DNA of 64,000 nt from Anolis carolinensis (Eukaryota). Shown here one piece after another: positions 36,801-45,800 of this stretch. The stretch spans positions 10,093,190 through 10,157,189 of the forward strand of contig NC_085846.1 of NCBI RefSeq assembly GCF_035594765.1, written 5' to 3'. The first letter of the stretch is position 1, and every line of letters begins with the position of its first letter. The position numbers were made by a program, and so were the translations under genes. The notes under the pieces were generated by a model. That model was not told where the DNA came from. It worked only from the letters and a program-made list of their open reading frames with translations, and did no database searches.

Positions 36801-39800
36801 CAGCGCAAAAGAGATGGCACCATGGATTGCTTGCATATTGAACGCCTTTTGAATGATGTGTAAAGCAACATCAATTTGTGCGGTCATGATCCACACTTTC
36901 ACAGCAAAGCTCATGTCATCTACAGCAATGAACATATTTGCAGAGAGAAAAAAGGTCAGCCATGTGAACAATCCCACTTCCCCATATAGGATCATCACGT
37001 TTTCTTTGCCATTCACGAAGGTATCTACATTATTGAAGAAACCTTCAAACATTTCATGAAAACCTATATTTTTTGGAAAAATGACTTTAGAAGCAATACA
37101 GATTCCATTCTGCAAAAACATTGGCTCCAGAGTTGACAAGAAATGCTCCCCGCTTTTTGTTTCCTTTGTAATGATCCCTACCCATTTCCATTCAAAATAC
37201 AGAAGGAGTTGGACAATTCCCCAGATCTGATAATCCTCGTTGGGGACCATGCGATAAAAGAAAGGGTCATCTGTTTGGTCAATCGTCCTTGGCTCAAATG
37301 AACCATAAGAAACCTACATGAATAAATAAAGAAATAGTGCAGACAATGGAACAAGGGTACTCATTTACTTCCTTTTTTGTTTTTCCTACCTTTTATTCCA
37401 GAATGATTCCAATATCGGCCTATTAGTTAATGCGGTATAGCTGTATAATATAGTTCATCTTCTAAGCACTAAAACTTTCCATTACAATGTTAATAAAGCA
37501 ATATATAAACTTGTGTATACACCCAGTGCTGCCCGGGTTTCCTTCCCCCTTTCAGGCACTGCCTGACTTACCGGGCGGAGAGGTTGTGGCATCTGGGCGC
37601 CCTCCTGGCCGTCATGGCACCAGAGGGGGCTCCTTCTTCCCAGAAGCCCCCTCAGTGGCAGAAGAATTTCCTGCCGGCTACACGGCAGGCAAACCAGAGG
37701 CAGCCCCTGCTCGCTCCCTAATTGGCAGGGCCAGGCTGTCCCTTGCAAGTTCAGGCAGCCTTAAAATGCTGCGAAAGGCCACTCCTGGCAGCGCAGCTTT
37801 CCTGTGTGTCGAGGAGGATCAGGGCAGCAGCAACCAGCGGCAAGCACTGGCAGCAGGGTGAAGTAGGCCTACTGTCTCCCACGAGTGACTCCCCCTCCCC
37901 CTCCTCTCTATCCAGGGCCAGTTTCTTTGCAGTCGCGCCACTTCTTCTTCAAGCGGCTCCATTTCTCCCTTCCCCCCTGCCAGGGCAGGTTACGTCACAG
38001 GGGCCTGTTACTTTGTGGCCTTGCCACTTTTTCCTTCACTGTCTTTTCTATTTAGGGTCTGTCCTTTGTGGCCGACACCCTCCCGCTTCCCTGGGCCTTG
38101 TCCTGGATTCAGCCTCATAGAATCATAGAATCATAGAATAGTAGAGTTGGAAGAGACCACATGGGCCATCCAGTCCAACCCCCTGCCAAGAAGCAGGAAA
38201 TCGCATTCAAAGCACCCCCAACAGATGGCCATCCAGCCGCTGCTTAAAAGCCTCCAAGGAAGGAGCCTCCACCACGGCCCCGGGGAGAGAGTTCCACTGT
38301 CGAACAGCTCTCACAGTAGAATCATAGAATCATAGAATCATAGAATAGTAGAGTTGGAAGAGACCTCAAGGGCCATCTAGTCCAACCCCCCGCTAAGAAG
38401 CAGGAAATCGCATTCAAAGCACCCCCGACAGATGGCCATCCAGCCTCTGCTTAAAAGCCTCCAAAGAAGGAGCCTCCACCACGGCCCGGGGGAGAGAGTT
38501 CCACTGCCGAACAGCCCTCACAGTGAGGAAGTTCTTCCTGATGTTCAGGTGGAATCTCCTTTCCTGTAGTTTGAAGCCATTGTTCCATGTCCTAGTCTGC
38601 AGGGCAGCAGAAAATAAGCTTGCTCCCTCCTCCCTATGACTTCCCCTCACATATTTGTACATGGCTATCATGTCTCCTCTCAGCCTTCTCTTCTGCAGGC
38701 TAAACATGCCCAGCTCTTTAAGCCTCTCCTCATAGGGCTTGTTCTCCAGACCCTTAATCATTTTAGTTGCCCTCCTCTGGACGCTTTCCAGCTTGTCAGC
38801 ATCTCCCTTCATCTGCGGTGCCCAAAACTGGACACAGTATTCCAGGTGTGGTCTGACCAAGGCAGAATAGAGGGGGAGCATGACTTCCCTGGATCTAGAC
38901 GTTATTCCCCTATTGATGCAGGCCAAAATCCCATTGGCTTTTTTAGCTGCCGCATCACATTGTTGGCTCATGTTTAACTTGTTGTCCACTAGGACTCCAA
39001 GATCTTTTTCGCACACACTGCTGTCAAGCCAGGCGTCCCCCATTCTGTATCTTTGATTTCCATTTTTTCTGCCGAAGTGAAGTATCTTGCATTTGTCCCT
39101 GTTGAACTTCATTTTGTTAGTTTCGGCCCATCTCTCTAGTCTGTCAAGATCGTTTTGAATTCTGCTCCTGTCTTCTGGAGTGTTAGCTATCCCTCCGAGT
39201 TTGGTGTCATCTGCAAACTTGATGATCGTGCCTTCTAACCCTTCGTCTAAGTCGTTAATAAAGATGTTGAACAGAACCGGGCCCAGGACGGAGCCCTGCG
39301 GCACTCCACTTGTCACTTCTTTCCATGATGAAGACGACGCATTGGTGAGCACCCTTTGGGTTCGTTCGCTTAGCCAATTACAGATCCACCTAACCGTAGT
39401 TTTGTCTAGCCCACATTTTACTAGTTTGTTTGCCAGAAGGTCGTGGGGGACTTTGTCGAAGGCCTTACTGAAATCTAGATATGCTACATCCACGGCATTC
39501 CCTGTATCGACCCAACTCGTAACTCTATCGAAAAAAGAGATCAGATTAGTCTGGCATGACTTGTTTTTGGTAAATCCGTGTTGACTATTAGCAATGACCG
39601 CATTTGTTTCTAAGTGTTTGCAGACCACTTCCTTAATGATCTTTTCCAGAATCTTGCCTGGTATTGATGTGAGGCTGACCGGACGGTAATTGTTTGGGTC
39701 GTTCTTTTTTCCCTTCTTGAAGATAGGGACCACATTCGCCCTCCTCCAATCTGCTGGGACTTCTCCTGTTCTCCAAGAACTCTCGAAGATGATTGCCAGT

Positions 39801-42800
39801 GGTTCTGAAATAACTTCCGCTAGTTCCTTCAATACTCTTGGATGTAGCTGATCTGGCCCTGGGGACTTGAATTCGTTTAGAGTGGCCAGGTGTTCCTGGA
39901 CAACTTGGTTCCCTATTTGGGGTTGGATTTCCCCCAATCCTTTGTCCATTCCATGTTGCTGAGGTTGAAGATGGCTTTCTTTTTGTGAGAAGACCGAGGC
40001 AAAGAAGGCATTAAGCAGTTCTGCCTTTTCCCTATCCCCTGTCACCATCACCCCATCTACTCCTTGCAGTGGCCCTATCGCCTCCTTTTTCTTCCTTTTT
40101 CTACCAACATAAGCAAAAAAACCTTTTTTGTTGTTTTTTATGTCCCTGGCAAGCCTGAGCTCATTTTGCGCTTTAGCCTTGCGAACCTTTTCCCTACACG
40201 AGTTGGCTATACGTTTGAATTCTTCTTTGGTGATTTCTCCCCTTTTCCACTTCTTGTGCATGTCACTTTTGAGCTTTAGCTCAGTTAGAAGTTCTTTGGA
40301 CATCCATTCTGGCTTCTTTGCACTTGTCTTATTTTTCTTCTTTGTTGGCACTGTTTGCATTTGCGCCTTGAGTATTTCACTTTTGAAAAACTCCCATCCA
40401 TCCTTAACTCCCTTGTTTTTTAATATCGGCGTCCATGGAATGCCGCTCAGTAATTCCTTCATTTTTTGGAAGTCAGCTCTCTTAAAGTCCAGAATGCGTG
40501 TTTGACTTGTCTTAGTTTCAGCATTCCTTTGTATTGCAAACTGCAGGAGCACATGGTCACTTGCCCCTAAGGATCCAACCACTTCAACTGTATTGATCAG
40601 GTCTTCCACATTTGTTAAGATTAGATCAAGAGTTGCTGATCCCCTTGTTGCCTCTTCTACCTTCTGGACCATAAAATTATCTGCAAGGCAAGTGAGGAAT
40701 TTGTTGGACTTTGTACTCTTGGCTGAGTTTGTTTTCCAGCAGATATCGGGATAATTGAAATCGCCCATGACTACTATATCTCTTCTTTGTGCCTGTTTGG
40801 TCAGCTGTTGACAGAAGGCTTCATCAAGTCCTTCATCCTGACTCGGAGGTCTGTAGTAGACACCCACGACAAGATCTTTTTGAGTCCCGGTTCCCTTGAT
40901 TCTTATCCAGATGCTTTCAAGCTGGTTTCCCGGATTACAGTCTTGCATTTCTTCTGCAACGTAACTGTTTTTGACATATAAAGCTACTCCCCCTCCTCTC
41001 CCCTTTGTTCTATTTATGTGAAAGAGGTTATAGCCCTCAATGGTTAAATTCCAGTGATGGGAGTCATCCCACCAGGTTTCAGTGATGCCTATGACATCGT
41101 ATGTGTGGTGCTGTGCTAGGAGTTGGAGTTCGTCTTGCTTATTTCCCATGCTCTGAGCATTAGTGTAAAGACATGTAAGCCCCTGTGACCTCCCCTCGAA
41201 CTGTTTATTTGGGATTATTGTGCTCTCTGTACTTGGTCCTTGCTGTGTTTGTGCAGCCCTCCGTTTAGCCTTACGGCGGTTCCCTGTGGTCGTGGGTAAT
41301 ATAGTGTTCGCCAGGCTGTTGTTCCCCTCCCCCAGTGGATTTAGTTTAAAGTGCGCCTGATGAGGTTTGTGAGTCTGTGTGCAAAAAGATGTTTTCCTAC
41401 TTGTGTGAGATGCACCCCATCGCTTGCCAGTAGTCCATCCTCTTGGAAGAGTAGACCATGGTCAAGGAAGCCAAAATGCTCCTCTTGACACCATTTTCTG
41501 AGCCAGTTATTGACCTGTACTATTTTTCCGGCCCTTGTAGAGCCATGTCCTACAACGGGGAGGAGGGATGAAAAGATCACATGTACATTATACAGTTTTA
41601 GCTTTGTTCCCAGAGCTCGAAAATCATTTGTGATCTTTTGAAAAGTATGCCTAGCGGTGTCATTGGTACCTACATGAATCAACATAAGGTGGGGAGGGTG
41701 ATGGGGCTTTAGGAGCCTGCTGAGCCTCTGAGTGATATGGTGTATTTTTGCCCCCGGGAGGCAGCATGTTTCTCGAGCCATCCCATCCGGTCTGGAAATG
41801 ATGGCTTCCGTTCCTCTAAGGAGGGAGTCCCCTACTACCAAGACCTGTTTCCTTTGAGGATTGACAGGGTCCCTTTTGTGCAAGACAGTGTGTATGTCCC
41901 CTGAAGAGTGTTCCTGTTGAAGTGAATCATGTAGGTGTAAAGTGTTGTCCTCCTCCTCAACATCCCCAGTGCATTCATCAATGACAATCCATTGAGATAC
42001 ATCCGAGAGCCCATTACTCTCCCAAGGATGTTCCTGTTGCTCCTGGTCTATGATTGGGGATGGAGCATTTGCATGATTACATAAGTGTGACTGTGGTGAT
42101 GCACTGTCCCCGTCAGGGCTATCCCCTGCGCATTGATCCAGGATGGTCCACTGAGTGGTATCTAAGAAACTGTGGTCCTCCACAAGATGTGTTTCCTGAT
42201 TGTATGTTAATGATGTAAGAATTTCAAATCTGTTGTGTAAATGCAGCTGAGCAGAGGAGTTCTGCGGAGGCTGCCTGGTCCTGCGTCTCCTTCTATGGGT
42301 GACCTCCTTCCAAGCCTGAGGGTTGTCTACCTTTGAGTTGATCTCCCCATAAGGTTCCTGATCATGGTCTTGGTGGTGTTGGTGTGATGCAGGCTGCTGA
42401 TCTACAGCAGCGTGTTGTGCAGTGTCCAAGAAGAGCTCGAGTGCCTGAATGTCCTTAAGGGTCTTAATACGGTGCTCGAGCTGTTGGATCCTCTGCTCCA
42501 TCAGAGTCATCTGTTTGCATTTGGAGCAGATGTAGTTGTCTAGTTTTTGTGTGAAAAAGCGGAACATGCCACAGCTGGTGCATGTGATGGGAATGTTTTG
42601 CTTTTGTTGCATCTCTTGGTGAGCGTGGTGGCCAAGTGGGATCTTTGTACAGTTAAGTAATATGCACGCACTTTATGTGCAGACTGCAACAAACCACGTC
42701 TTTGTGTATTTGTTTATGTTGCTTTGTTTCCTGTATGTACTGCAAAGGATAGTTAGTAAGTTCAGTGAGGAAGTTCTTCCTGATGTTCAGGTGGAATCTC

Positions 42801-45800
42801 CTTTCCTGTAGTTTGAAGCCATTGTTCCGTGTCCTAGTCTGCAGGGCAGCAGAAAACAAGCTTGCTCCCTCTTCCCTATGACTTCCCTTCACGTATTTGT
42901 ACATGGCTATCATGTCTCCTCTCAGCCTTCTCTTCTGCAGGCTAAACATGCCCAGCTCTTTAAGCCGCTCCTCATAGGGCTTGTTCTCCAGACCCTTAAT
43001 CATTTTAGTCGCCCTCCTCTGGACGCTTTCCAGCTTGTCAACATCTCCCTTCAACTGTGGTGCCCAAAATTGGACACAGTATTCCAGGTGTGGTCTGACC
43101 AAGGCAGAATAGAGGGGGAGCATAACTTCCCTGGATCTAGACGCTATTCCCCTATTGATGCAGGCCAGAATCCCATTGGCTTTTTTAGCAGCTGCATCAC
43201 ATTGTTGGCTCATGTTTAACTTGTTGTCCACGAGGACTCCAAGGTCTTTTTCGCACACACTGCTGTCAAGCCAGGCGTCCCCCATTCTGTATCTTTGATT
43301 TCCATTTTTTCTGCCGAAGTGAAGTATCTTGCATTTGTCCCTGTTGAACTTCATTTTGTTAGTTTTGGCCCATCTCTCTAGTCTGTCAAGATCGTTTTGA
43401 ATTCTGCTCCTGTCTTCTGGACTGTTAGCTATCCCTCCCAGTTTTGTGTCGTCTGCAAACTTGATGATCGTGCCTTCTAACCCTTCGTCTAAGTCGTTAA
43501 TAAAGATGTTGAACAGAACCGGGCCCAGGACGGAGCCCTGCGGCACTCCACTTGTCACTTCTTTCCATGATGAAGACGACGCATTGGTGAGCACCCTTTG
43601 GGTTCGTTCGCTTAGCCAATTACAGTTCCACCTAACCGTAGTTTTGTCTAGCCCACATTTTACTAGTTTGTTTGCCAGAAGGTCGTGGGGGACTTTGTCG
43701 AAGGCCTTACTGAAATCCAGGTACGCTACATCCACAGCATTCCCTGTATCGACCCAACTCGTAACTCTATCGAAAAAAGAGATCAGATTACTCTGGCATG
43801 ACTTGTTTTTGGTAAATCCGTGTTGACTATTAGCAATGACCGCATTTGTTTCTAAGTGTTCGCAGACCACTTCCTTAATGATCTTTTCCAGAATTTTGCC
43901 TGGTATTGATGTGAGGCTGACCGGACGGTAATTGTTTGGGTCGTTCTTTTTTCCCTTCTTGAAGATAGGGACCACATTCGCCCTCCTCCAATCTGCTGGG
44001 ACTTCTCCCGTTCTCCAAGAACTCTCGAAGATAATTGCCAGTGGTTCTGAAATAACTTCCGCTAGTTCCTTCAGTACTCTTGGGTGTAGCTGATCTGGCC
44101 CTGGGGACTTGAATTCGTTTAGAGAGCCCAAGTGTTCCTGGACAACTTGTTTCCCTATTTGGGGTTGGATTTCCCCCAATCCTTCGTCCATTCCGTGTTG
44201 CTGAGGTTGAAGATGGCTTTCTTTTTCTGAGAAGACCGAGGCAAAGAAGGCATTAAGTAGTTCTGCCTTTTCCCTGTCCCCTGTCGCCATCACCCCATCT
44301 TCTCCCTGCAATGGCCCTATCGCCTCCTTTTTCTTCCTTTTTCTACCAACGTAAGCAAAAAAGCCTTTTTTTGTTGTTTTTTATGTCCCTGGCAAGCCTG
44401 AGCTCATTTTGCGCTTTAGCCTTGTGAACCTTTTCCCTACACGAGTTGGCTATACGTTTGAATTCTTCTTTGGTGATTTCTCCCCTTTTCCACTTCTTGT
44501 GCATGTCACTTTTGAGCTTTAGCTCAGTTAGAAGTTCTTTGGACATCCATTCTGGCTTCTTTGCACTTGTCTTATTTTTCTTCTTTGTTGGCACTGTTTG
44601 CATTTGCGCCTTGAGTATTTCACTTTTGAAAAACTCCCATCCATCCTTAACTCCCTTGTTTTTTAATATCGGCGTCCATGGAATGCCGCTCAGTAATTCC
44701 TTCATTTTTTGGAAGTCAGCTCTCTTAAAGTCCAGAATGCGTGTTTGACTTGTCTTAGTTTCAGCATTCCTTTGTATTGCAAACTGCAGGAGCACATGGT
44801 CACTTGCCCCTAAGGATCCAACCACTTCAACTGTATTGATCAGGTCTTCCACATTTGTTAAGATTAGATCAAGAGTTGCTGATCCCCTTGTTGCCTCTTC
44901 TACCTTCTGGACCATAAAATTATCTGCAAGGCAAGTGAGGAATTTGTTGGACTTTGTACTCTTGGCTGAGTTTGCTTTCCAGTCCTCCGGTCGGTCCTGG
45001 CAGTCCATGGCCAGGGCTTGCTGCTTCCTCTTCCCACACAGCCTGGCTGCCTCTCTAGGCCTCACCTAGCTCTCAGGCCCTTTTTCTGGAAGGCATTCAT
45101 AACTTCTGGGTCTGAAAGGGCTGTGAGGCACCTGGCTGCTTACCACAATTCATGTTAATGTGGCCTCCAGCACAGTACTCGCACGCATGGTTATACCGGC
45201 AGTGGGCACGCTGGTATTTCCCCATGTTGTACTCTCAGTACGCAGTGCGCCTTGTCTTCTTTCTGCCCCACCCTCGTTCTGAGTGCCCTTTACCTTTTAT
45301 GCTGGGCCCCACCGCAATGAGCCAGATGTTATGGTTGGTGAGGTCTCACCTGGCCCTGGTGCTCTGTGATGACCTTTTGCAAAAGGCTGTGTCATAGGCA
45401 ATGACAGCTGCCTCACCTGCTAGTTTCCTGGCCTTCATGATGTAAATGAGGTGGTTGGCGAGGTGCCAACCTCACTCGCCACCACCCCCATGAAGACTGA
45501 GTAACCAGCCATCCAGTTAACAAAGGTTTGCTCAGCGGGCTTGCTGCTGTTCCCAGCCCGGCTCCAAATAGGAAGCAGGTTCGCCAACAGAGCCGCTGCA
45601 GGTGTGGGTAAGCGAGCCTCCAGCCAGCCATCTTTCCCTTGCCCTCACCCCAGTCAAGCTGCCTCCTGGCTCAAGGCCTACCCTGTCAAGGTGGCAACTA
45701 CCTTCCTGCAGAAAGGCTTCTCTTCAGGCTTCCATATTCCTGTAGTGGGACCCCTGCAGGGCCTTTGTTTTGGGCAATTTAAAATTGGCCGCTCAGTTAC

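Follow-up and report, generated by a model that had tools for sequence, protein, structure and literature searches.

A conserved candidate −1 ribosomal frameshift signal at the ORF1/ORF2 junction of tetrapod CR1 LINEs

The CR1 element and its host locus

CR1 LINEs are the dominant transposons of birds and reptiles. The window, the whole 64,000-nucleotide stretch of Anolis carolinensis DNA that was analysed and to whose positions all coordinates refer, carries an intact 4.4-kb CR1 LINE on the minus strand. It runs from 42762 to 38318 (about 4445 nt) and comprises a 5'UTR, ORF1, a linker, ORF2 and a 3'UTR. The 3'UTR terminates in (ATTCTATG)n, with ATTCTATG repeats at 38318–38350 and the tail end near 38318. 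Three features of the CR1 clade are present: an 8-nt microsatellite, (ATTCTRTG)n, replaces the poly(A) at the 3' end, ORF2 combines an N-terminal APE-type endonuclease with a reverse transcriptase, and ORF1 encodes an SGNH esterase. The element is inserted into an older, 5'-truncated CR1 copy (42763..44982, minus strand), which is interrupted at 42763/42762 and picks up again at 38317, with CTG on both sides of the insertion; the last 203 nt of this host copy are found at 38317–38115. The older copy is 97.6% identical to positions 38521–40739 of the intact CR1 and the (ATTCTATG) repeats recur at its 3' end. It does not contain the ORF1/ORF2 junction and lies outside the signal described below.

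ORF1 (41341..42612, minus strand) encodes a 423-aa protein whose C-terminal part is an esterase domain of the SGNH/GDSL type (Pfam Lipase_GDSL_2, E 1.6e-10). It matches the ZfL2-1 ORF1p esterase (4c1b, E 2e-22) and shows 100% identity with a UniRef protein from Anolis carolinensis.

The ORF1/ORF2 junction

The 3' end of ORF1 reads ...CGC ACT TTA AAC TAA and, because the terminus is ACT TTA AAC TAA, a slippery heptamer U_UUA_AAC (41344..41350, minus strand) stands in the X_XXY_YYZ phase of ORF1 directly 5' of the UAA stop (41341..41343, minus strand). A direct reading of the minus strand agrees with the original prediction on the heptamer, its phase and the adjoining stop, whose position is kept in all lineages compared and whose identity is TAA, TAG or TGA. 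U_UUA_AAC ranks among the shiftiest heptamers on mammalian ribosomes (PMC5009743). It is the only canonical heptamer found in phase among the 424 codons of ORF1, and, given the codon usage of ORF1, the probability that some canonical heptamer closes the ORF by chance is about 0.2% per lineage and that TTTAAAC does so is about 1e-4.

ORF2 lies in the −1 frame with respect to ORF1; the frame is open from 41461 through 38417 with the stop at 38416–38414, so the reading agrees with the claim that no stop occurs between about 41461 and the first ATG at 41149. The −1 reading that begins with the final C of the heptamer comprises 976 codons plus the stop (38414..41344, minus strand), and a shifted product would have 1399 aa since the 423 aa of ORF1 would be followed by these 976 codons. 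The first 53 codons of this reading (41186..41344, minus strand) form a linker that contains neither an in-frame AUG nor a stop and is predicted to be disordered (pLDDT below 50 for residues 1–53 of the AlphaFold model). It is followed by the APE-type endonuclease domain (40517..41185, minus strand; model residues 54–276; Pfam Exo_endo_phos), the model of which structurally matches TRAS1, R1, L1 EN and APE1 with Z of about 20, and by the reverse transcriptase domain (39065..39709, minus strand; Pfam RVT_1, E 1e-34; residues 585–799 of the translation from 41461).

The first AUG of the ORF2 frame (41147..41149, minus strand) is located 3' of strand β1, four residues past the predicted catalytic Asn codon (41161–41159, minus strand; N62 in the model, assigned from the ExoIII alignment and the structural matches), and the motif CLYTNAQS sits 5' of it. 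In the ExoIII alignment the first Met pairs with ExoIII L11, which brings the Asn of YTN opposite ExoIII N7, and in the AlphaFold model β1 spans residues 55–63 with the first Met at residue 66. Structural alignments place the beginning of the endonuclease fold at model residues 51–56 (L1 EN 3–238, Z 19.9; TRAS1 EN, Z 21.8; APE1 from residue 58; Bacillus subtilis ExoA from residue 1) and, by offset, N62 falls opposite L1 N14, APE1 N68 and ExoA N7. Initiation at the first anole AUG would, on this model, delete β1 and the catalytic Asn. The proposal that a start at the first ATG truncates the endonuclease is borne out by the ExoIII alignment, the AlphaFold model and the structural alignments alike, and the downstream ORF is in the −1 frame, open across the heptamer and devoid of a usable start of its own.

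Conservation of heptamer, phase and frame

Alignment of reptile and bird CR1 junctions had been suggested as a check on the heptamer and its phase, and the outcome was positive in squamates, turtles, alligator, birds and frog. The set comprised 15 lineage representatives: three lizards (Anolis, Zootoca and Varanus), a squamate-like ENA sample, two turtle lineages (Pelodiscus and Chrysemys), Alligator, the ostrich (Struthio), bird-type families from metagenomes and a poison frog (Dendrobates). TTA AAC followed by a stop forms the ORF1 terminus in 15/15 representatives; it follows a T in 14 of these and a G in the remaining one (L089, in which GAG gives G_UUA_AAC). All other conserved degenerate codon columns of ORF1 (23/23) are polymorphic and the last two codons alone are invariant; likewise, in the rest of the ORF1 C-domain 15 of 252 Leu codons (6%) are TTA, compared with 15/15 at the junction. 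Low divergence alone does not explain this pattern because the ORF1 stop codon itself varies. Site and phase are conserved phylogenetically with suppression of synonymous variation, and the heptamer is under strong purifying selection at the nucleotide level. ORF1 homologues end exactly in ...LN in about 45 of 63 cases, from frogs to birds.

The frame relationship follows the same pattern: ORF2 is in the −1 frame at every junction free of indel disruption, and 38 of the 43 metagenome copies with the exact heptamer have it in the right phase. Turtles and alligator show a stop in the −1 frame 8 codons 5' of the heptamer, therefore any shift would be confined to the end of ORF1. Old dead copies carry ordinary point mutations in the heptamer (e.g., TTTAAAG, TTCAAAC and CTCTAAAC), hence the heptamer is no mutational cold spot. 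Three sister anole copies have TAG instead of TAA as the stop, and the four copies compared are too alike to inform.

The linkers vary between 37 and 96 codons across lineages, and no conserved AUG was found in them among the lineages compared. An in-frame AUG 5' of the catalytic Asn is absent from Anolis, Dendrobates and bird-type families A and C. In one bird-type family a Met is found just 5' of β1.

Sequences downstream of the heptamer

Efficient −1 frameshifting usually requires a stimulatory hairpin or pseudoknot. The original prediction had seen no convincing structure of this kind 3' of the heptamer, and minimum free energy (MFE) folding and a pseudoknot scan lead to the same view. MFE z-scores of the 120 nt 3' of the heptamer in six species (-0.9, +2.2, +0.1, -2.0, +1.2 and +1.4) gave no indication of a conserved or unusually stable structure, and MFE folding of 90 nt from 13 lineages yielded no shared one. 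The scan for hairpins and H-type pseudoknots, a home-made and crude procedure using contiguous stems and summed hairpin energies, returned background values against mononucleotide shuffles except in Varanus and bird-type family C. In all, no conserved or significantly stable stimulatory hairpin or pseudoknot was found 5–9 nt downstream among the local structures of 12–13 lineages. No Rfam family matched the element or the junction region, a single sub-threshold lncRNA match being attributable to chance. In Varanus, a G7/C6 hairpin lies 6 nt 3' of the heptamer.

The only conserved downstream element at the junction is a G-run, GGGGGAGGGG in the anole (41324..41333, minus strand), which begins 10 nt 3' of the heptamer and is a candidate stimulator. 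It is present 6–11 nt 3' of the heptamer in most lineages (mostly 9–11 nt, 6 nt in Varanus); the exceptions are the frog, with a weaker GGG, and the alligator copy, with a displaced G7 at 17 nt.

Proposed translation of ORF2

Conservation of UUUAAAC and the adjoining stop from lizards to frog makes it probable that CR1 produces its endonuclease and reverse transcriptase by −1 frameshifting. On the comparative evidence we consider it fairly probable that the anole junction is a programmed −1 ribosomal frameshift signal, conserved across tetrapod CR1, that gives a roughly 1399-aa ORF1–ORF2 fusion. For the majority of ribosomes translation would finish at the ORF1 stop, yielding the esterase-type ORF1 protein. 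A minority would move one base backwards, either while the Leu and Asn tRNAs occupy U_UUA_AAC or on A_AAC when the stop codon is already in the A site. Shifted ribosomes would read the 53-residue disordered linker in the −1 frame and continue into the endonuclease and reverse transcriptase, producing a roughly 1399-aa ORF1–linker–EN–RT fusion that would be the LINE counterpart of Gag-Pol. With shifting at low efficiency the ORF2:ORF1 ratio would stay low, and as part of the fusion ORF2 would be physically attached to ORF1 multimers on its own encoding RNA. The G-run would act perhaps through a bound protein or a G-quadruplex-like form and not as a hairpin or pseudoknot. A more specific version, to which we are evenly disposed, is that frameshifting on U_UUA_AAC plus the stop predates the split of amniotes and frogs in tetrapod CR1 and is stimulated jointly by the adjacent stop and by the linear G-run some 10 nt further on, the latter by way of a G-quadruplex or a protein bound to it. 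G-rich stimulators in natural frameshifting were anticipated, with no known case, by a 2016 review (PMC5009743).

The original prediction of an ORF1(esterase)–EN–RT fusion made by a −1 shift gains from the conservation of the junction and the synonymous freeze, while slippage itself, as opposed to termination and restart, its efficiency and any stimulatory role of the adjacent stop and the G-run are what we infer. Several observations weigh against frameshifting, among them the lack of a conserved stimulatory structure. The stop always adjoins the heptamer, as termination-coupled restart would also need, and neither a protease nor a 2A motif is present that could free ORF2 from the fusion; the NPGP of the 2A/StopGo motif D(V/I)ExNPGP occurs in 0 of the 29 linkers listed. 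In addition, retrotransposition of the zebrafish L2 element ZfL2-1 reportedly depends little on ORF1p (cited in PMC13343379).

Alternative explanations

Termination-coupled reinitiation would have a fraction of the ribosomes restart a few nt 3' of the ORF1 stop, using either AUG or a near-cognate codon, which in the anole is CUG. This would produce a separate ORF2 protein that starts in the linker, a mechanism proposed for L1 (AUG-independent) and shown for SART1 (UAAUG), and the heptamer would be kept for another reason, for instance as part of the restart context. Restart mechanisms are known or thought to operate in other LINEs (PMC3708506; PMC5009743), no frameshift-stimulating structure was found in the junction folds and scans, and the invariant stop is placed 5 nt 5' of ATG in the ostrich, CTG in the anole, GTG in Zootoca, ACG in Pelodiscus, TTG in the alligator and AAG in bird-type families A and B. 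However, bird-type family C has TCA and the frog CAT at the position of the putative restart codon, which is therefore not conserved, and any single change of an ancestral ATG is near-cognate by definition. A restart codon 8 nt past the heptamer, as suggested by the five amniote copies with ATG, CTG, GTG, ACG or TTG, was rejected as not general in view of these codons and of the AAG in families A and B. The arrangement is not of the UAAUG type either: the anole has UAA, 5 nt and CUG, and an AUG is found in the ostrich copy only. Reinitiation also finds no conserved UGGGA-type upstream motif, as no invariant UGGGA (18S-complementary, TURBS type) is present in the last 26 codons of ORF1 (about 80 nt); in the catalytic block D-G-x-H only the Asp-Gly codon pair (GAT GGN) is a candidate, and its Gly codon is GGG, GGA or GGT. 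Restart would impose no −1 frame on ORF2 and leaves unexplained the synonymous freeze of exactly the seven slip-site bases in the correct phase, and we regard it as rather unlikely.

A further explanation, which we hold to be improbable, is that the heptamer is kept for a reason unrelated to ORF2 (e.g., the C-terminal Ala-Leu-Asn of the esterase together with a packaging, transcription or processing signal) and that ORF2 is expressed in some other way, for example from an internal entry site, by leaky scanning to a codon further downstream, or from a subgenomic or spliced RNA. The terminal residues of ORF1 could matter for the protein because the C-terminal helix of ORF1 aligns with the last part of the ZfL2-1 esterase structure, and the Met right before β1 in one bird-type family also speaks for this explanation. 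Nevertheless, protein constraint cannot fix TTA over the five other Leu codons in 15/15 representatives, nor the third-base T of Ala/Thr in 14/15. As for the other routes, the linkers, of 37–96 codons, differ too much in length and sequence to hold a conserved entry site, the region has no Rfam match, and neither the anole nor the frog nor two of the bird-type families has an AUG that would yield a complete endonuclease. Finally, the idea of a chance coincidence in a single anole family, for which it could be said that the four copies of that family are too similar to be informative, is refuted by conservation across five tetrapod classes with saturated synonymous divergence elsewhere, given a chance of about 0.2% per lineage for a canonical heptamer closing the ORF.

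Comparison with known systems

The frameshift proposed for CR1 resembles the −1 frameshifting of Gag-Pol in retroviruses, LTR retrotransposons and domesticated genes (HIV-1, RSV and PEG10) in that an upstream 'structural' ORF finishes with the heptamer, a polymerase ORF that has no start codon of its own follows in the −1 frame, and a predicted minor fusion product would set the stoichiometry. Unlike Gag-Pol, CR1 is a non-LTR element, its ORF1 is an esterase and not Gag, it has no protease, no hairpin or pseudoknot was detected at its junction and the stop abuts the heptamer. The heptamer is identical to the U_UUA_AAC of the ORF1a/1b site of the coronavirus IBV. The ORF1a/1b frameshift site of equine arteritis virus is G_UUA_AAC, and the CR1 variant G_UUA_AAC found in L089 equals this arterivirus variant. 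These coronavirus and arterivirus sites rely on a pseudoknot 5–7 nt downstream, whereas no conserved one was found in CR1.

Arterivirus nsp2TF and cardiovirus 2A share with CR1 a downstream element at a long spacer. In this trans-activated frameshifting the spacer is 11–14 nt (PMC5009743), compared with about 10 nt in CR1 to a linear G-run for which no intramolecular structure is required. The nsp2TF site is recognized by nsp1β with PCBP on a C-rich linear motif, whereas the CR1 G-run has no known binding protein; in addition, the nsp2TF and cardiovirus 2A systems belong to RNA viruses and make −2/−1 shifts on G_GUU_UUU, unlike CR1. In barley yellow dwarf virus (BYDV), dianthoviruses and potato virus M (A_AAA_UGA) the shift site is directly followed by a stop. 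These plant-virus sites are like CR1 in having the 0-frame stop immediately 3' of the slippery sequence, where it may aid shifting, and BYDV frameshifting additionally requires a long-distance RNA interaction (PMC5009743).

Other LINEs share with CR1 a bicistronic RNA and low, non-canonical expression of ORF2, the strategies described being unconventional AUG-independent translation in L1, UAAUG coupling in SART1 and, in invertebrate members of the CR1 clade, 2A-like peptides at the N-terminus of ORF2 (PMC3708506; PMC5009743). None of these strategies involves a slippery heptamer and, conversely, none of the CR1 linkers examined has a UAAUG or an NPGP, and the frame relation is fixed at −1. 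A database 'fusion' protein (P0076, 455 aa) that runs from ORF1 into the linker frame derives from a copy with an upstream indel and not from the heptamer.

Novelty and significance

How ORF2 is translated from a bicistronic LINE RNA is a long-standing question. A 2013 paper on recoding in the CR1 clade described the mechanism of ORF2 translation as "not clear" (PMC3708506), and the only non-LTR elements mentioned in a 2016 review of frameshifting are HeT-A, TART and L1 (PMC5009743). A full-text literature search found no published report of CR1 frameshifting, the primary CR1 descriptions, which lay outside the search, being a place where the junction may be mentioned.

If the proposed frameshift is real, CR1 would provide the first case of a vertebrate non-LTR polymerase expressed by frameshifting, and a Gag-Pol-like fusion, with no need of a protease, would account for the dosage of ORF2 and for the way it is coupled to the RNA that encodes it. 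The frameshift would also add a structure-independent, G-run-associated case to the eukaryotic frameshift sites. The annotation of CR1 ORF2 would change, since present gene models begin at an AUG that truncates the endonuclease. Moreover, an intact heptamer with an open −1 frame would provide a simple criterion for potentially active CR1 copies in birds and reptiles. Intact elements in three species retain this arrangement, with the −1 frame open for 976 codons in Anolis, 976 in Zootoca and 971 in Dendrobates.

The CR1 element and its insertion site

The CR1 LINE is a full-length element of about 4445 nt on the minus strand (42762 to 38318) that interrupts an older, 5'-truncated CR1 copy (minus strand, 44982-42763, continuing at 38317-38115) to which it is 97.6% identical. 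The insertion point leaves 203 nt of the older copy on its 3' side, CTG flanks the insertion on either side and each copy terminates in (ATTCTATG)n. ORF1 (42612-41341, minus strand) encodes 423 aa with a SGNH/GDSL esterase domain (Pfam, E 1.6e-10) and matches the solved structure of the ZfL2-1 ORF1p esterase (4c1b, E 2e-22); a UniRef Anolis protein is 100% identical to it, in a 90% cluster of 71 members. ORF2 comprises an APE-type endonuclease and a reverse transcriptase. Because the intact element inserted into the older one, the ORF predicted at 42653-44311 is a chimera of old-copy ORF2 and the 5'UTR of the new element.

The ORF1-ORF2 junction in Anolis

ORF1 ends ...CGC ACT TTA AAC TAA, and the original prediction of a slippery heptamer T_TTA_AAC in X_XXY_YYZ phase (41350-41344, minus strand) directly before the stop (TAA, 41343-41341, minus strand) was confirmed by the sequence. 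Reading-frame analysis likewise placed ORF2 in the -1 frame relative to ORF1, open on the minus strand from 41461 past the heptamer to a stop at 38416-38414. Counted from the heptamer's last base, 976 codons precede this stop, so a shifted product would have 1399 residues, in agreement with the fusion of roughly 1400 aa that had been proposed. Among the 424 codons of ORF1 this is the one in-phase canonical heptamer, and the chance of finding one at the ORF end, given ORF1 codon usage, is about 0.2%.

It had also been claimed that a start at the first ORF2 ATG would truncate the endonuclease, and three approaches agree on this. In an alignment with ExoIII, the first ORF2 Met falls at L11, and the Asn of the YTN motif at N7. 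The 315 residues that follow the heptamer were modelled with AlphaFold on the basis of an 11-sequence alignment (pLDDT 70 overall, 80-90 within the endonuclease domain); in the model, residues 1-53 are disordered, strand beta-1 spans 55-63 and the first Met is at residue 66. Structural alignment sets the beginning of the endonuclease fold at model residues 51-56, with matches to the TRAS1 endonuclease (Z 21.8, 206 aligned, rmsd 2.8) and the L1 endonuclease (its residues 3-238, Z 19.9); APE1 matches from its residue 58 and Bacillus subtilis ExoA from its residue 1, and model N62 stands, by offset, opposite L1 N14, APE1 N68 and ExoA N7. According to the model, the first AUG of anole ORF2 cannot give a complete endonuclease, and together these placements imply that ORF2 decoding must begin upstream of it.

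Conservation of heptamer, stop and frame

The junction was compared in three sister anole copies, Zootoca vivipara, Varanus komodoensis, a squamate-like ENA contig, Pelodiscus sinensis, a divergent Chrysemys lineage, Alligator mississippiensis, Struthio camelus, Dendrobates tinctorius and 80 metagenome loci (L009-L088), nearly all from one sample, JGI Ga0065711. Copies were compared unaltered, without consensus or sequence repair. Over 500 CR1 endonuclease matches came from sample Ga0065711, the largest of their contigs measuring 77 kb. The CR1 ORF1s of this sample are nearest to penguin and pelican proteins, hence its host DNA is bird-type; the metagenome loci group into at least three families. 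None of the contigs resembled human DNA.

Alignment of these reptile, bird and frog junctions bore out conservation of heptamer and phase: TTA AAC plus a stop forms the ORF1 end in 15 of 15 lineage representatives, and ORF2 is in the -1 frame in every copy without indel damage. The preceding codon is GCT or ACT in 14 of the 15 and GAG in one (G_UUA_AAC); the stop itself varies among TAA, TAG and TGA. TTA accounts for 15 of 252 Leu codons in the rest of the ORF1 C-domain, where all 23 of the other well-conserved degenerate columns use two to five synonymous codons. With its codons frozen amid such variable columns, the heptamer is under selection at the level of its seven nucleotides, beyond selection on the protein. 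About 45 of 63 ORF1 homologues have ...LN as their exact C-terminal end. The exact heptamer occurs in 43 metagenome copies, 38 of them in phase with the endonuclease; the rest of the metagenome copies are 5'-truncated within the linker or carry single-base heptamer changes, as expected of dead copies. In turtles and alligator a block in the -1 frame 8 codons before the heptamer leaves the very end of ORF1 as the one place for a shift.

The G_UUA_AAC variant (GAG TTA AAC TGA, 1631-1640 of L089, the contig from ENA sample ERZ27276729) retains both the G-run, at 10 nt downstream, and the -1 frame of ORF2. As two different database proteins (P0006 and P0007) both end in ...RRELN, this natural slip-site variant seems to characterise a family and not to be an isolated mutation.

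Linker and downstream elements

A poorly conserved linker of 37-96 codons separates the heptamer from the catalytic Asn, its conserved features being limited to a leading G-run and the endonuclease start. No conserved AUG was found in it among the compared lineages, and it lacks any AUG in Anolis, Dendrobates and bird-type families A and C. The original prediction had seen no convincing stimulatory structure, and foldings and scan point the same way: no conserved downstream hairpin or pseudoknot was found in the compared lineages, MFE z-scores scatter around zero in six species, predicted structures are dissimilar among 13 lineages and a crude hairpin/pseudoknot scan rose above background only in Varanus and one bird-type family. 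A textbook-like stimulator is present in one lineage only, Varanus komodoensis, where G7 followed by C6 (L091, 9609-9632) could fold into a strong hairpin that begins 6 nt past the heptamer (z about -2.7).

A run of at least five G is conserved downstream, at a distance of about 10 nt from the heptamer (6-11 nt for the majority of lineages); exceptions are the frog (GGG repeats only) and the alligator copy (G7 displaced to 17 nt). Since the run also codes for Gly-Glu-Gly in the -1 frame, its conservation can be read as an RNA signal or as a protein signal. Protein-activated frameshift sites have spacers of 11-14 nt, and G-quadruplex stimulators are effective in synthetic constructs and not yet known in nature (Atkins et al., PMC5009743).

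Frameshift or restart

The -1 frameshift signature is present, with a top-ranked in-phase heptamer, a startless -1 polymerase ORF and deep conservation with frozen synonymous sites, but the expected RNA stimulator is missing; a frameshift-made ORF1-ORF2 fusion is for this reason rated, from sequence, as somewhat probable. It could arise by tandem slippage on U_UUA_AAC or by P-site slippage on A_AAC with the stop in the A site, and both routes would be compatible with a stop that is invariably adjacent. As the main rival, ribosomes would terminate and then restart at a non-AUG codon close by, a mechanism put forward for L1, which would account for the invariant stop position and for the near-cognate codons present in several copies: the codon 8 nt after the heptamer (41335-41333) is ATG in ostrich and CTG, GTG, ACG, TTG or AAG in several lineages. 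Restart, rated as rather unlikely, leaves unexplained the frozen heptamer, the fixed -1 frame relation and the two lineages with TCA or CAT at the putative restart codon. This codon may be a remnant of an ORF2 start that was used in an ancestor and later became dispensable.

The literature searched, which stopped short of the original CR1 descriptions, yielded no account of frameshifting at this junction in CR1. It is unmentioned in a 2026 survey of CR1-group elements (PMC13343379), the esterase structure paper, the amniote CR1 phylogeny and the ORF1 modularity paper; the ORF2 translation mechanism is "not clear" according to Odon et al. (2013) (PMC3708506), and the non-LTR elements in a frameshifting review are HeT-A, TART and L1 only (PMC5009743).

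Intact copies and misnamed proteins

Three elements are intact through ORF2, those of Anolis (976 open codons), Zootoca (976) and Dendrobates (971). The apparently intact Zootoca vivipara (L004, from 6038 on) and Dendrobates tinctorius (L008, from 5960 on) elements are candidates for current CR1 activity, one in a lacertid, the other in a poison frog. Five Varanus komodoensis GenBank proteins (P0027, P0033, P0042, P0046 and P0052) match the CR1 ORF1 esterase, and three of the five end in ...TLN; their names, respectively 'HAUS augmin-like complex subunit 7', 'Beta-parvin', 'Replicase polyprotein 1a', 'Platelet-activating factor acetylhydrolase IB subunit gamma' and 'Polyribonucleotide nucleotidyltransferase', look like annotation errors.
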